A stretch of 64,000 nt of DNA from Blepharisma stoltei ATCC 30299. Taxonomy: Eukaryota > Protista > Ciliophora. Where the stretch lies: assembly GCA_965603825.1 (NCBI GenBank), contig CBFDEM010000054.1:744001-808000 (forward strand), written 5' to 3'. The position numbers and the translations under genes are program-made. Below are positions 12,286-19,173 of the stretch, one piece after another (position 1 is the stretch's first letter; each line of letters begins with the position of its first letter). The notes beneath the pieces were generated by a model that saw nothing but the letters and a program-made list of their open reading frames with translations, searched no databases and had not been told where the DNA came from.

Positions 12286-12927
12286 TGTATTTTAAGCTAT
12301 AATTTTATTCAAAATATTTAATTTAAATGATCTTACTTACATAGATTTTCAAAAATAATAACTATAATAAAAAAATTTCTGAATTGTTATGGATTATTAT
12401 ATTTTTTAATCGATTATTTCTTTATAAGTAAGAAGCATTGAAAAAGATCTGAAAATGTTTTGAGATAGCAGATGAAGAATTTATAGAATGAAAAAGACTA
12501 AAGAAACAAAAATAAGGCAGACCCTTAAAATAAGAGATAATAGTAACTATAGCCTTCATAAAACTAATATAATTAGTCAACAATTTAATGTTTTACTAAA
12601 TTTTTAATGTGTTTTATATTAATAATGACTAGTTAAAGCCTCTATTATATTCGTAATTCTAGGAATAACACCAAGGATTATTTATCAATTGATATTTAAC
12701 AATATCTTTTATCTTTATTATGCCCAAAGAATCTTTCAAAAATTATGTATTATTTTTGAAGAATTTGGTGTTCTTATAGCTATGGCTCAAGGAAGAAGAC
12801 ACATATCCTTTAAAGACATTTTTATGGGTTTACTTCTACCAAAATAGTATTTCGATTTTACAGACTAAAAAGTTTCTTAAATCTTACATATTACCAAAAA
12901 ACTAATATTAATTACACCAGCATCGAA

Positions 12928-15333
12928 TTACTCATTTCAGAAAGAAGTATTTATATGAGGTGCTCTATCAATAGAGTAGTACTGATCTCTGCATAATTGA
13001 TAGTAAGTTGATGAGTAGGAGTTGAGCTTTTTTAATTCTGATTTAAACTCATCTAAACTCATTTCGCAATTGTCTATGTCAGTAATAAAGCTTATCTGTT
13101 CATCATTAACTTTATTTACAAAATTCCCAAACAAAATTGACTCTAGTTGCATTCCTCCTTCTTTCTTTGCTGCTTCTTTCAGAAGTCTATCCTTTCTCTT
13201 AGCCATAGAGTAGCCCTCAAAAATGGTTCAGATTTTTTCTGGAGTGTGATTTTCAAATGAATGCAGGCCATTTTCAGTTTTCCTCAAAGCATGCGCTAAT
13301 TCATGTAAGTACGCGATTATTTTTACACACTGAAAGAATGGTGTTTTTTGCTTGGTTATTGAATTGATTAGAATGAACCTCCTAAGACCGTCACTCCATG
13401 AGTTCTTCAGGGTAAATCTACATAAAATGTTTTTTCTTCAAATCCTACTGCACTTGCAAGATCATACCCATACTCTGTAAAAGCGGTGCGCGCCACATTA
13501 GATTCCACAATTGATAAGAAAAGATCTTTATCAGATGAAGAAACAGGCTCACAAACACTTCTAATCATATTGGCAGCATAAGAGTTAGCTTCAGTCAAAA
13601 TATTATCATGAAAGCCATGTTTAAGATTCATGACAAAAATGGTCGTGAAATGTGATACAAAATAAAGGCGAAGTGGATATATTTGGAACACCTCTTTTGA
13701 TTAAGACTGAATGAATTCAGAATTCTATCTTTGTTGCATCATTTAGCTGCTCATACCCAATTTTAGATGGATTGCTCTCATCAATCTGAGCGTCTATATA
13801 GCTATATGTTGAAAAATTTCTAGTATTTTTTTTGGAATTTCCATGTCGTTATTTAAAGTTATCTCGGTTATTGCCGTAAAAAAATGCTTATGCCAAAGAT
13901 CGGTTGCTCTTTGTAACTCTTCTGATCCTAAATTTATTATAAAATCGTATAAACTTGGGATGTAATGAATAATTTGCTGAATTGAAGTATAATAATGTCC
14001 GATCTCTTGAATTGGGAATGTATTTTGTGCCAAATAATTGACCAAGTAAAGTATATAATCACTTATTATTACCTCTCTTTCATTTGTGCTTCCTCTATTG
14101 TTGTTCGTTAAAGTATATATTATCATTTGCTTTATTACAGTTTCTTCATTTTCTTTTCCAGCAGCTCCATGCGAGAGCTTTTTAAAGTAAATACCCAAAA
14201 AGTCGCTCATGTATAATTGAGACTTTAGTTGATTGTCAACAAAACTGATTAAATAGTTCCGTGTTTTGCGTTTTAAAAACAATAGATCAACAATTTTGCC
14301 AAAATTTGGATAATCTAGTGAGCTACCTATATTCTCATAAATCATTATTTTTGGTACAAACTAAGCACAGAAATGATTTTTTTAACGCTAATATCTGGAT
14401 TATTAGAATAGAAGTCAATTAGCTTATTGAAGCAAAGAACTGTAAATTGATTTGACTGAGAGCATAATTTTAAAAAGAGAAATTTATCGTCCTTATTGTT
14501 CTTATCAAACATGAAATTTCAAATGTTTTGGAAAAAAGTATCATCTTTTTCTAATTCAGGTATAGCGCTTTCCCGAGGATGGCGCGGAATGGCGCCATCC
14601 TCGGGAAAGCGCTATATTCATACACAATTATATTTTGCTAGGATTGCCATCAAGCATACCAAAGCTTGTCTCGAGTGGATTTTTTGGGCCAGCAAGCATC
14701 AATTGCCGCTTTTGCCATTTCAGTATTGATCAAATAGATCAAAATTATATTCTGCCAAGCTGCTCATAATAAGTAAATAAAGCTCTGCCCATAAAAAGTC
14801 ATCTTTTTCTTGGATCAATCAGTCCAAGAAATATCTAAATTTTTCATCACGTATTAAGCTCACACTTGGCTCTATTTTATATCTTATAGCGAAAGTTAGT
14901 AGCAAAGACAATAGTGTGTGAGACTGGTCTTCTGTGCTTCAATAAAGTAAATCATAAGGATTAAGATTTTCTCAATCTAACTCTTGCAGCTGCTTTATTA
15001 ATTCTGTGCTGACCCTATCTTTTATAGATTCTGGAAGATCATCATTAGATTTGCAAAGGAATTCAAGAACGATATCAGCGTATTCTGAATCAACTAAATC
15101 TTTGAGACTGGAGTAATCCACACGTCCTGCAAAGCTTGGATACCCAGCACTCATAAGCACTTTGAAAGCTTTTTTTGGCTCAGAGAAGAGTTGGCTTGTG
15201 AATGCAGTCCTATCTAGAATTGAGCTGAGCTCATTCGTTATGATATCTTGCTTTTTGGAGTCTAACGATTTTCTAAATACTGTCTGATTTGAGGAAAAAA
15301 ACCAATTAGGCTAGAGGGAAGGTTTGCTAGCAT
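12928..15333 (-). pseudogene. Disrupted gene for a large helical protein with a C-terminal HExxH zincin-like metallopeptidase domain (multiple frameshifts plus a palindromic insertion)
   Basis: Fragments join into one protein: DLP(W)RTHGVTVLG/FILIN...IIAYLHELAHALRK (13291-13305)...HTP...EGGMQLESILFG; about 6 frame changes and a 54-bp insert carrying TAG. Confidence 0.7.
14561..14616. mobile_element. TA-bounded perfect palindrome (IES-like / micro-MITE)
   Basis: TATAGCGCTTTCCCGAGGATGGCGC-GGAATG-GCGCCATCCTCGGGAAAGCGCTATA; 25-bp perfect arms, 33/56 G+C; removing 54 bp between the TA repeats restores the host frame. Confidence 0.8.
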
Positions 15334-16356
15334 TCTATTTAATAATTATTATTAGAATGAAAACCATTAGTTAAAATTACAATTTATTAGATATTTAATT
15401 TATAAATTTTAAACACTTCATCTTTTATTCATATTTTCTTATTCCTCACTTTATCAAATTATTCATAAAATTAAGCATCCAATGATTAGCCCGTTGGTTC
15501 TCAATGAAATTTATTTCTATATTGAAATCTCAGATTATCTGAATATGTGGTTAAGGATATGCCAAACTACACCTTATAAAAGCCCCTTCGCTAATATTCT
15601 CATCCCTAATATTTCATATACCTATATTTCATTCTAAATATATCAATTATCAAGTCAATTTTGGCTAAATCAATATTAATAATGAACGAAACTTCAAAAA
15701 TCATATAGCTGTATTATTTTTAATTCAAAATATCAAGCTTTTATAGATTTATTTTAACAATATTTAATTTTTCAAGTAGATCTCATCAATGAGCGTCAAA
15801 TCTTAGATTTATAAATTTTATATTTTAAAAAAATATTTGCAATCCAATAAAAACTCAGATATTATTATTAGAAAAAATACAATATATGACTAGTATTATG
15901 CTTGTGCAGTCTAAATATAATACTCATAATTCTATCTATATAATCATCAGCCTCATTTAATGGATTTTTCTATGCGAGCAGTCTCAAGGCCTCACTGACA
16001 TGCTTAGCTGCATGATATTAGCCAAAAGGCTCCCTAAAGATATCTAAAACTAGCTTAAAAATCTGATGCCTGACAAGTCAAAAATTGATATTATTTAAAT
16101 AGCTTTTATCTTAAAAAATAAAGAAGAAATCCTAACAAGAAGGGAGCTATTGAAGGAAGAGCTTATAGACACGCTGTTTTTCCTTAGGGTAGAAATGGAG
16201 GAGAATAATTTACTTATTTTGATCAAGCCTTTGGAAGCTTTACAACATTCTAATACAATATATATCACATACAATTATGTATTTTTGCCAAAAAATTATT
16301 TTTTATTTATAGAGCTCTTAAATTAATTAAAAGATTAATTCACAGATTATTTTCAT

Positions 16357-19173
16357 ATGGAGTCAATTGAAGTTCCACAGATCACAGAGAAATGTGCAGG
16401 GATTTATTCATTGAACACCTGCATTGAAGAAAGACTGGAAAGCTTAGTCAGCACTTGGGCCAAATTGGTGGTCAAACGACCTTATATTTTTATTGTCCTC
16501 TCCTTAATAATAGGCTCAGCTTTGACAATTGGACTTTATTTTTCAAATGTAAATAACGATGTTGACGAAATATGAGTTCCTACTGATTCTGGAGCAAAGA
16601 ATCATAAAGATATTGTTGAAAAAGCTTATGGGAAAAGTGAGCGACGATATCAAATTTATATAACTTCAGCCACAAACAATACCAATTTATTAGAAGTTGA
16701 GCCTTTTGAAGAGCTTATAACTTTTAACAGCCAATTAAAACAGCTAAATTTCTCAGGAATTTGTATGAAAATAAATGCATCAAATCCTTGCAGATTTTAC
16801 GAATGACCACTAGGGTTTTGAGAAAATTTTGACAATACCATAATTTTTGATGCAAAAACTCCTTATCAAGTCCAATACAAAATTCAAAGCGGGAAAGGCT
16901 TAGCAACTTTATATCCAAACTATGATGACCGATATATTTCTATCATTGAAATGCTGTCTGGGCGGCTTCCTTATAATTTAACTGTTGACTCGGATGGGTC
17001 AAATAATATATATTACTTTGAAGCTATGCAGTATGAGTATTATACTCAGCCTAACGACCTATCAGATAGCGAAATTTCTGACTGGGAATCAGAATTACGC
17101 GATTTTGTTAAAAAATTTAACGAAAAAAGTATGTATATTACTGCTGACCTTTATTTTTTAGGATTAGTTAAAAGTGATTTTGTGGACTCTTTAAGCTTTG
17201 ATTTAGTGCTTTATGCTGGAGCTATGGTTTTTATATTTTTATACTCATTTTTTATCATAGGAAAATGCCATCCTACATTATGCAGATTTCCATTAACTCT
17301 TGCAATGATAATTTCCTATGCAGTTGCCATCCTAGAAGCTCTTGGTATTATGGGATATGCAGGCTTTGAGCTTATTTCTTCAAATCTCGCAATATCATTT
17401 TTCCTTGCCATCGAAACTGTATTATATTGTTCATATCTTGTGAGGTCAATAGAAAATATCTCTATAGAGCCTGGGGAAACTATTTATTATGATAGAAAAT
17501 TTGTTTTTGGGTTTAAAACAGTTGGGGTCTCACTATTTAAAACAATGCTAATTACAGTGACAGCATTTTCTATTGGAAGTATATCGAAATTTCCAGCAAT
17601 TTCAAGCTTTTGTACTGCAAGTGCAATTGCTACAATTTTTTTGTATTTTAATTGTATGACTTTATTTTCAGCATGCTTGTTTTATGATTTTAAGAGGGTT
17701 TTACAGAATAAAAGAGACTGCTGTGGGCAATGCCTTTGCTCGCCAAAAAGTATTTTATGCTGCAAAGGAAAATGTGCTGCAAACAGCCTAGATCAAGAAA
17801 TTTCAATTTTTCAGCTTTTTATTGAATATAAAATAGTAAAACTACTGCTGAAGAAAAGTATGATATATTTTGTGATCTTAATTTACCTAGGAATTATTGC
17901 TGCAGGTATTGCAGGAATATTCCAAATTAACCAAGAGCTTAAAGTAGATTGACTTGTCAAAAATCATTCCTCACAGATAAAAAGCGCAATAGACATTAAA
18001 GACAAATATTTTGGTGATCGAGGACACATAGTAGGGTTTTATATGACAAATACAGATTTTTCTTCAAAATCTTCACAGTTAAGAATGATAGATTTGTCAA
18101 ATGCTATGAGAAATTGTGATGGATGCAACAAAAAATGAATAAAGGATGGAACTGTGCAGTCGTTTTATGATTCATTAATAGACTGGGTAGGCCAATCTTT
18201 TTGTAAGATTGATAATTCAAATCAAGCTGTAACTCTTGAAAGCGGAGTGATTCCACAATTTTGGTTTAATTCATGTTTACAGCAGTTTTTACAAACCCCA
18301 TTAGGAAAATATTATTCTAATGATTTAATTATGAAAAATGGGTCGCTTGATACCGCAAGATTTTCAGCCAGGCTAAAATTTGTGTCTACCAAATCTGACT
18401 GTGTGCAGCTAAAATTCGATCTATCTGATATTTCTGATAAAGGGCCAGGGTATACATTCCCATACAATAAAAATTTTCTTTATTATGCACAGCTAGAAAG
18501 CTTATCAAACGATTTTCTTATTTTTTGTTTAATAGTGATCCTTTCAGCTGGCTGCTATACTTTATTTTTAACAGTTTTCCCATCCTCAATAGTCCTACTG
18601 GTAGTCAATATACTTGCAATAGAGCTAGGTGCTATTTTCTCTATGTGGGTGCTAGATGTAGCTTTTAATGTTGTCAGTGTGCTGCATTTATATATGATAG
18701 CAATAGTGGCTTGTGAATTTTCTGCCCATATTATACATTCATTTATAGCTCAGCCTGGCTCCAAAAAATATAGGCTGAAATTTATGTTTAAGTATATAGG
18801 AAGCTCGCTGCCTCATGTAGTTTTATCAGTTTTTATAGCGATTTTGGCATTTTTGATTCCGACTGAGTCATATATTTTTTCAGTTTGGGCCAAAATATGG
18901 GGGAGCTCGATGGCTTTTATACTTTTTGACTGCTTTTTCGCATTGCCAATACTTTTAAGCTTATTTGGGCCTCAGACAGTTACCCTTGATGAATTAAGTT
19001 CAAAAGTAGAAACTGATGAAAATGCTCAAAGGAAAATAGAGGTTATGGATTACCAATGGGCTAAAAAAGAATCAGTTGAGTATCTAAAAGAAAACAATGA
19101 TGATAATGTTCGCTTTAACATTAGTGACAGTACCTTTGTAGAAAACAATGAAAAAGTAATATTTTATAAGTAG
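16357..19173 (+). CDS. Patched/NPC1-like RND-fold sterol-sensing membrane protein (~938 aa)
   Basis: EI(W)VP after TM1, luminal loop, SSD (FPAISSFCTASAIATIFLYFNCMTLFSACLFYDFKR), second TM repeat (CEFSAHI, LPILLSLFGP); three ORFs share a frame across TGA codons. Confidence 0.88.

Follow-up and report, generated by a model that had tools for sequence, protein, structure and literature searches.

Introduction

How does a GC-rich, perfectly symmetrical palindrome bounded by TA come to lie in a gene of the expressed genome of the ciliate Blepharisma stoltei, and would its removal restore that gene? Ciliates are thought to keep mobile DNA from the working nucleus by developmental excision. The answer which we favor, and regard as likely, is that the palindrome is a somatically retained mini-MITE with IES-like ends, one of a family kept in the MAC of B. 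stoltei, and that it resides in a pseudogene.

The palindrome is located in a stretch of 64,000 nucleotides, referred to here as the window (G000:C54:744001-808000); positions given below without a contig are window positions. The underlying genome assembly comprises 41.46 Mb in 64 contigs with about 33% GC, and TGA serves as a sense codon in its long frames. It matches the published MAC (somatic) assembly of B. stoltei ATCC 30299, with its 41 Mbp, 66% AT, UGA read as Trp and introns of 15-16 nt (PMC9942806). The IESs described from this organism are bounded by TA; their length distribution peaks first at 65 bp and then periodically as far as about 110 bp (Seah et al., 2023; PMC9942856).

A perfect palindrome inserted at a TA

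Including the TA at each end, the palindrome measures 56 bp (14561-14616). It consists of two arms of 25 nt each (14561-14585 and 14592-14616, read on the plus strand) which are 100% complementary to one another and are separated by the asymmetric 6-nt spacer GGAATG (14586-14591). The left arm starts with TATAGCGCTTT, and the first 11 nt of the element fit the IES end signature TATAgnnnTT, which is that of the classes of about 153 and 174 bp (PMC9942856). The GC content is 0.589, compared with 0.312 in the flanking 2 kb; the single strand is calculated to fold with -33.6 kcal/mol (z = -11.6), and no chance matches to the arm are expected in the window. These measurements bear out an initial annotation of the locus, which had described 25-bp perfect arms, a 6-nt spacer and about 59% GC in AT-rich surroundings. 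On the minus strand, the frame across the palindrome reads GTA TGA ATA TAG, whereby the element supplies an in-frame TAG stop (14614-14612). Deletion of 14561-14614 yields ...NCVWIPELEKDD... (VWIPEL) within 303 open codons, with TGA read as Trp, whereas removal of 52 bp instead of 54 breaks the frame. The same annotation had read both the stop-bearing sequence and the stop-free, in-frame V-W-I-P-E-L that a 54-bp deletion leaves, and had done so correctly.

An alignment of the host gene with its five paralogues provides the empty state of the site. All five carry a single TA exactly at the position of the palindrome and none carries arm-like sequence there, which is thus not native to the paralogues. 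Judged from this alignment, the palindrome is an insertion into a TA, because each of the five paralogues has one TA at that place. Across the nine loci of the subfamily to which the window copy belongs, removal of 54 bp joins frame pieces into long ones at four (303, 615, 955 and 691 codons), while removal of 52 bp does so at none. In structure, the element has the boundaries of an IES, namely a TA at both ends and a single TA after removal. Two descriptions would fit the sequences equally well: an element proper of 52 bp (14563-14614) for which the TA is a target-site duplication, or a 54-bp unit put into a TA without duplication. The two are inseparable because every copy begins and ends with TATA, and both agree with the restored frames and with the single TA of the paralogues.

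The host gene

The palindrome interrupts a decayed and apparently transcribed gene on the minus strand (12731-15680), which is a copy of an orphan family of six members. Five of these form a tandem array on the same contig, about 75-90 kb away (G000:C54:666000-684300; loci L014-L024), and the window copy is dispersed and in inverted orientation. It is 81-88% identical to its five paralogues. The only member with an uninterrupted frame is L021 (843 codons); in each of the four remaining copies of the array, as in the window copy, the frame is broken into at least two pieces. In the window, the number of frame pieces is at least five. The host copy carries private 1-nt deletions near 15296, 14348 and 13378, none of which occurs in the five paralogues, and larger indels around 13680-13900. 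Short-read contigs which match the window exactly span all three deletion sites, and the deletions are therefore not long-read errors.

As a consequence of the three deletions and the indels, excision of the palindrome would restore the frame only locally and would not rescue the gene. The initial annotation had proposed that precise excision repairs the host and that the element might inactivate it. The repair stands at the local level, where two frame pieces become 303 codons, but not at the level of the gene, in which three private frameshifts and the indels remain; inactivation by the element is not supported, the host being broken by these other lesions as well.

Pfam searches with six pieces of the host copy and two of the intact paralogue returned nothing above threshold, and an Atlas search with the host gave a single, weak match (score 0.78), the target being a cluster named 'hypothetical protein' that bears the label Ciliophora. 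Sequencing run X8, which we guess from its coverage pattern to be an RNA run, covers only 12921-15219 and gives exact-match contigs, and the host copy appears to be transcribed. Its sequence identifies the host as a pseudogene, apparently a transcribed one, within an orphan family. Downstream of it, window positions 16863-17236 match sequence beside paralogues L016 and L020 (83-87%), and positions 17038-17097 match sequence beside L015 and L022 (93%), which implies that the duplicated unit carried some flanking DNA.

A mobile family of minimal palindromes

A genome search with the 22-nt arm identifies nine loci on nine contigs. Their 56-bp units, designated subfamily A, comprise the window copy and the eight loci identical to it; they show zero substitutions and lie in unrelated flanks, and the spacer points in one direction in some of them and in the other in the rest. 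For the inner 14+14-nt core, the number of genomic loci is 39, and a covariance-model search (model built from 32 copies, 150 candidates scored) yields at least 49 loci, a figure which is a lower bound. An exact-centre pattern adds five further loci, which brings the family to at least 54, namely the nine identical copies and at least 45 diverged relatives of the same geometry. This geometry (25-nt arms, a 5- or 6-nt loop, TATA at both ends, 52-53 bp) is constant in all copies, and the family splits into at least five sequence subfamilies. In the manner of MITEs, the window element combines terminal inverted repeats (25-nt perfect arms around a 6-nt spacer, 52 bp in all) with a lack of coding capacity, and its identical and related copies are found at many non-homologous sites.

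Nine identical copies in unrelated flanks, together with the many relatives, show that the palindrome is not a local accident, and the possibility raised earlier that the arm has no other copies is contradicted by them. The suggestion of a minimal, two-armed, non-coding element at a TA gains support from both the copy census and the empty paralogue sites. The idea that an undescribed transposon family might stand behind the arm is likewise borne out, in that a mobile family exists which is absent from the literature searched. In this literature, palindromes in B. stoltei are mentioned only by PMC9942856 and its preprint; a 52-54-bp somatic palindrome family or its arm is found neither in these two nor in the MAC genome paper, and the arm sequence is also absent from the supplement text of PMC9942856. 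Within the literature searched, the family is thus undescribed.

The somatic genome contains neither solo arms nor longer elements with these arms, and no autonomous, transposase-encoding element with matching ends was found in it. A bacterial or environmental origin of the GC-rich core was rejected, as the core has no exact match in a metagenome collection or in 185,579 prokaryotic species genomes. With respect to the insertion sites, 26 of 49 copies have an A immediately before the left TA, and equally 26 have a T immediately after the right one, which suggests a weak ATAT-like target preference of the family beyond the AT-richness of the genome.

Reading frames and selection

A stop is present in only one of the three frames of the element, and the window copy is inserted in precisely that frame. 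At three other loci (L003, L007 and L012), the element adds 18 codons to a frame that reads through it. These three copies share one element frame (Y-SAFPRMA...AILGKAL-Y), a coincidence which, with three cases, is not significant. The copy at L007 (L007:1498-1553; G000:C22:103368-103423) is an identical member of subfamily A which is read through within a frame of 973 codons; in the flanking piece, two stretches match the Predicted AAA-ATPase domain of Pfam (PF09820, E = 2e-19), and a second, diverged family member lies 2.3 kb from this copy, at C22:105693-105748.

Subfamily A copies are found in long open frames at four of nine loci, compared with 35-49% for random TA sites. The older subfamilies are depleted in long open frames (5 of 40 copies in a tally made before five subfamily D loci were added; binomial p = 0.002). 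Such depletion of older copies from coding frames is expected if the elements truly stay in the expressed nucleus. True Blepharisma IESs, unlike the older palindrome copies, are about 70% intragenic (PMC9942856).

Empty junctions in the read contigs

The read evidence consists of assembled contigs from the runs X1, X5, X7 and X8, which show presence and not amounts. The alternative that retains most probability, albeit little, is that the palindrome is an ordinary, efficiently excised IES which was mistakenly kept in the reference, most MAC molecules being precisely empty at the locus. A joint that skips exactly 54 bp, from TA to TA, is indeed found in all four runs, with a depth of 127-174 compared with about 100-210 in single-copy flanks. 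However, L014 and L015 natively have the sequence of the empty junction over 9 nt on its left side and 31 nt on its right, and the X8 contig with this joint carries 18 mismatches to the window, of which those checked against the paralogue alignment are shared with L014/L015. If a second empty path specific to the window existed, the contig would be split 9 nt from the junction, but in each run the joint is found in one contig only, which extends for 30 nt or more to either side. Given the native junction, the mismatches and the one contig per run, the joint is not assignable to the palindrome locus. Furthermore, the long-read assembly has the filled form at all of the at least 54 loci, and the depletion of older copies from coding sequence is what MAC retention predicts, excised IESs being mostly intragenic.

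No locus-specific product of precise excision was found among the contigs of X1, X5, X7 and X8. Short-read contigs of a second data set contain the element, and a loose end at 14561 in X1 joins the palindrome to the flank of locus L010; no explicit filled-junction contig was found for the palindrome locus itself among the short-read contigs. A retention score based on the empty junction was rejected, as L014 and L015 carry this junction natively and the X8 contig is a paralogue transcript. The 15-mer across the empty junction, which the initial annotation had recommended for that purpose, is native in these two paralogues and would give false empty-site reads. Of the two identities considered there, an unexcised IES or a minimal MITE, the mobile, two-armed, MITE-like element thus stands, whereas the IES is less well supported, the element lying in the somatic assembly and no locus-specific precise-excision product having been found. 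It is present in the somatic assembly, while an IES is absent from the mature somatic genome, and its excisable unit of 54 bp is shorter than the published minimum IES class of about 65 bp.

A deletion anchored on the element end

A different joint is specific to this locus. Contigs in X8 and X1 connect 14560 directly to 14657 and thereby lack 96 bp (14561-14656). In X8, the joint lies on a contig of 470 nt whose two parts (334+136 nt) are identical to the window, and in X1, which is a DNA run with even intergenic depth, the contig with the joint has a depth of 76 compared with about 200; the window-specific G at 14646 has a depth of about 102 of about 200 in this run. The left edge of the deletion is exactly the left TA of the element, and after a permitted 2-nt shift the deletion runs from TA to TA, as does the 54-bp unit. 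It takes the element and 42 bp (14 host codons), including the TAG, and stays in frame. We infer that the IES excisase makes this deletion.

Several other origins of the joint were considered. RNA splicing was rejected, as the ends are TA..TA and not GT..AG, introns measure 15-16 nt and the joint is also present in X1. An artefact of the k-mer graph was rejected as well, since such a graph needs real junction reads. A jump of the polymerase over the hairpin is unlikely, given that the deletion runs 42 bp past one arm, has 2 nt of microhomology and occurs in two studies. X5 and X7 come from a third study, and their contigs do not show the deletion; for this reason it could be an allele or a culture-specific variant and not the result of recurrent excision.

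Possible copies beyond the somatic assembly

The runs X5 and X7, which we guess from their coverage pattern and assembly size to be germline-enriched DNA, have about twice as much assembled sequence as the others. In the palindrome bin (window 14494-14614), their summed depth is 32-36 thousand compared with about 1.2 thousand in X1, a roughly 30-fold difference, and about 50 contigs fit both arms in X5/X7 and none in X1, although summed contig depths double count. One X5/X7 contig leaves the palindrome centre at 14609 (42-nt centre) into GC-rich sequence, and this loose-end sequence is absent from the somatic genome. The extra depth and the loose end may represent more relatives in germline-limited DNA, perhaps including a longer one.

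These observations bear on a second alternative, which we judge slightly less probable than the ordinary IES. In this scenario, the nine identical copies result from somatic transposition in a long-propagated vegetative culture, driven by MAC transposases, and are absent from the germline. The zero substitutions among the nine copies, the heterogeneity of the palindrome locus between studies and the several transposase families with complete catalytic triads that the MAC encodes (PMC9942806) would all be in line with it. Yet the roughly 30-fold summed depth and the 50 or so extra arm contigs in the runs of study P2 suggest more copies outside the MAC assembly, and the older, diverged subfamilies of the same geometry imply long germline inheritance.

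Conservation of the stem and its meaning

Conserved throughout the family are the TATA ends and the centre, GATGGCGC-loop-GCGCCATC, and the intervening stem is variable. Compensatory double changes affect at least 8 of the 25 stem positions, 93% of cells are Watson-Crick pairs, and arm positions 5-6 are frequently unpaired across the family. This pattern lends itself to a third alternative, marginally less probable again, according to which the hairpin is mobilised by a structure-specific enzyme, enters a TA without duplication and keeps its symmetry because the structure is what is recognised. The fixed geometry over at least five subfamilies and the conservation of the TATA base and the GATGGCGC-loop tip along with compensatory changes in the stem speak for it, and TA duplication and non-duplication are indistinguishable here. 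On the other hand, symmetric changes are equally expected if one transposase binds both ends; no candidate enzyme was found, the unpaired positions 5-6 fit poorly, and B. stoltei has documented MITEs of the Tc1/mariner/pogo type, with inverted repeats and flanking TA.

The perfect symmetry, together with a GC content unlike that of the surroundings, might also be read as the scar of a local foldback or template switch, or as an artefact of sequencing or assembly. Such an origin is hardly credible, being refuted by nine identical copies with unrelated flanks on nine contigs and opposed by short-read contigs of another data set that join the palindrome to the L010 flank, by paralogues devoid of arm-like sequence and by the lack of a prokaryotic or metagenome match to the core.

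A model for the retained element

Returning to the somatically retained mini-MITE, the family consists of very small, non-coding, palindromic mobile elements, with the window copy stemming from a young subfamily of nine identical copies. After divergence of the paralogues, the element entered a TA around codon 243 in one member of the host family, in the single element frame that contains a stop. With the host copy being a pseudogene on other grounds, the insertion is tolerated, and its removal would give no protein. The 54-bp unit lies below the shortest IES class (about 65 bp) and would for this reason escape normal IES removal. In some cultures, a share of the MAC copies instead has the left TA of the element joined to a TA 42 bp past its right end, and the resulting 96-bp in-frame deletion has a length within the range of 65-115 bp over which the excisase operates.

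The element is probably too short for normal excision, which fits both the 65-bp minimum and the 96-bp variant. A more far-reaching and quite tentative idea, which we regard as less likely than not, is that the family acts as a natural length ruler for the excisase. Its ends would be recognised as IES boundaries, but at a distance of 54 bp they could not be synapsed, so that the element stays in the soma and a cut end pairs with a distant TA, of which the 96-bp deletion would be an example.

Since the insertion lies in what is already a pseudogene, the biology of the locus itself is modest. What is particular to it are the insertion in the stop frame, the absence of gene rescue by excision, the confounding paralogues and the boundary-anchored 96-bp deletion. 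The family illustrates how elements can leak into expressed DNA, and somatic hairpins with IES-like ends, one helical turn below the shortest excised class, allow the geometric limit proposed for the excisase to be tested directly. Should the length-ruler idea be true, collapse to a bare hairpin would be a route by which a germline element escapes elimination and persists in the expressed genome. The 96-bp deletion anchored on the element end is a molecular marker that can be followed in DNA and RNA. Finally, the locus is a warning that empty-site k-mers from paralogues can mimic excision.

Comparison with known systems

Among the IESs of B. stoltei, 376 are palindromic, including 153 of about 228 bp, and some have been proposed to be MITE-derived, or 'MITIES' (PMC9942856). 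The published palindromic families (rnd-1_family-87/-160, the class of about 228 bp) share with the present family the species, the palindromic form, the TA boundaries, a presumed origin from MITEs and the end motif TATAG...TTT, which fits TATAgnnnTT. They differ from it in being confined to the germline, in their efficient excision and in their length, which is mostly 153-228 bp and never below 65 bp, whereas the family described here measures 52-53 bp and is somatic at no fewer than 54 loci; this distinction is drawn from their published descriptions.

BogoMITE, a B. stoltei element derived from pogo/Tigger, and the Tc1/mariner-type MITEs resemble the palindrome family in being non-coding and TA-flanked, in their inverted repeats and in having near-identical young copies, also in genes. 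BogoMITE alone is about 389 bp long, has TAA/TTA terminal direct repeats and an autonomous partner, Bogo, and is germline-limited, in contrast to the palindromes, in which the internal sequence is reduced to a loop of 5-6 nt, for which no partner was found and whose copies are somatic. Bacterial REP/BIME and Correia-type repeats are comparable in form only, as very short, dispersed hairpins with stem covariation. The palindrome family does not belong with them, since it is eukaryotic and nuclear, its core has no prokaryotic match and no RAYT-like enzyme is implicated.

The 96-bp variant has its closest counterparts in cryptic IES excision and in the alternative-boundary excision of Paramecium, in which MAC-destined sequence is likewise lost from TA to TA. 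In B. stoltei, TA-bounded 'cryptic' excision of MAC sequence is an infrequent event, its median share of the reads being about 5% (SI of PMC9942856), while the 96-bp variant makes up about 40% of the contig depth in one DNA run. Its length lies within the periodic range of 65-115 bp, yet not clearly on a published length peak. Unlike the cryptic events, it has one boundary that coincides exactly with the end of a mobile element.
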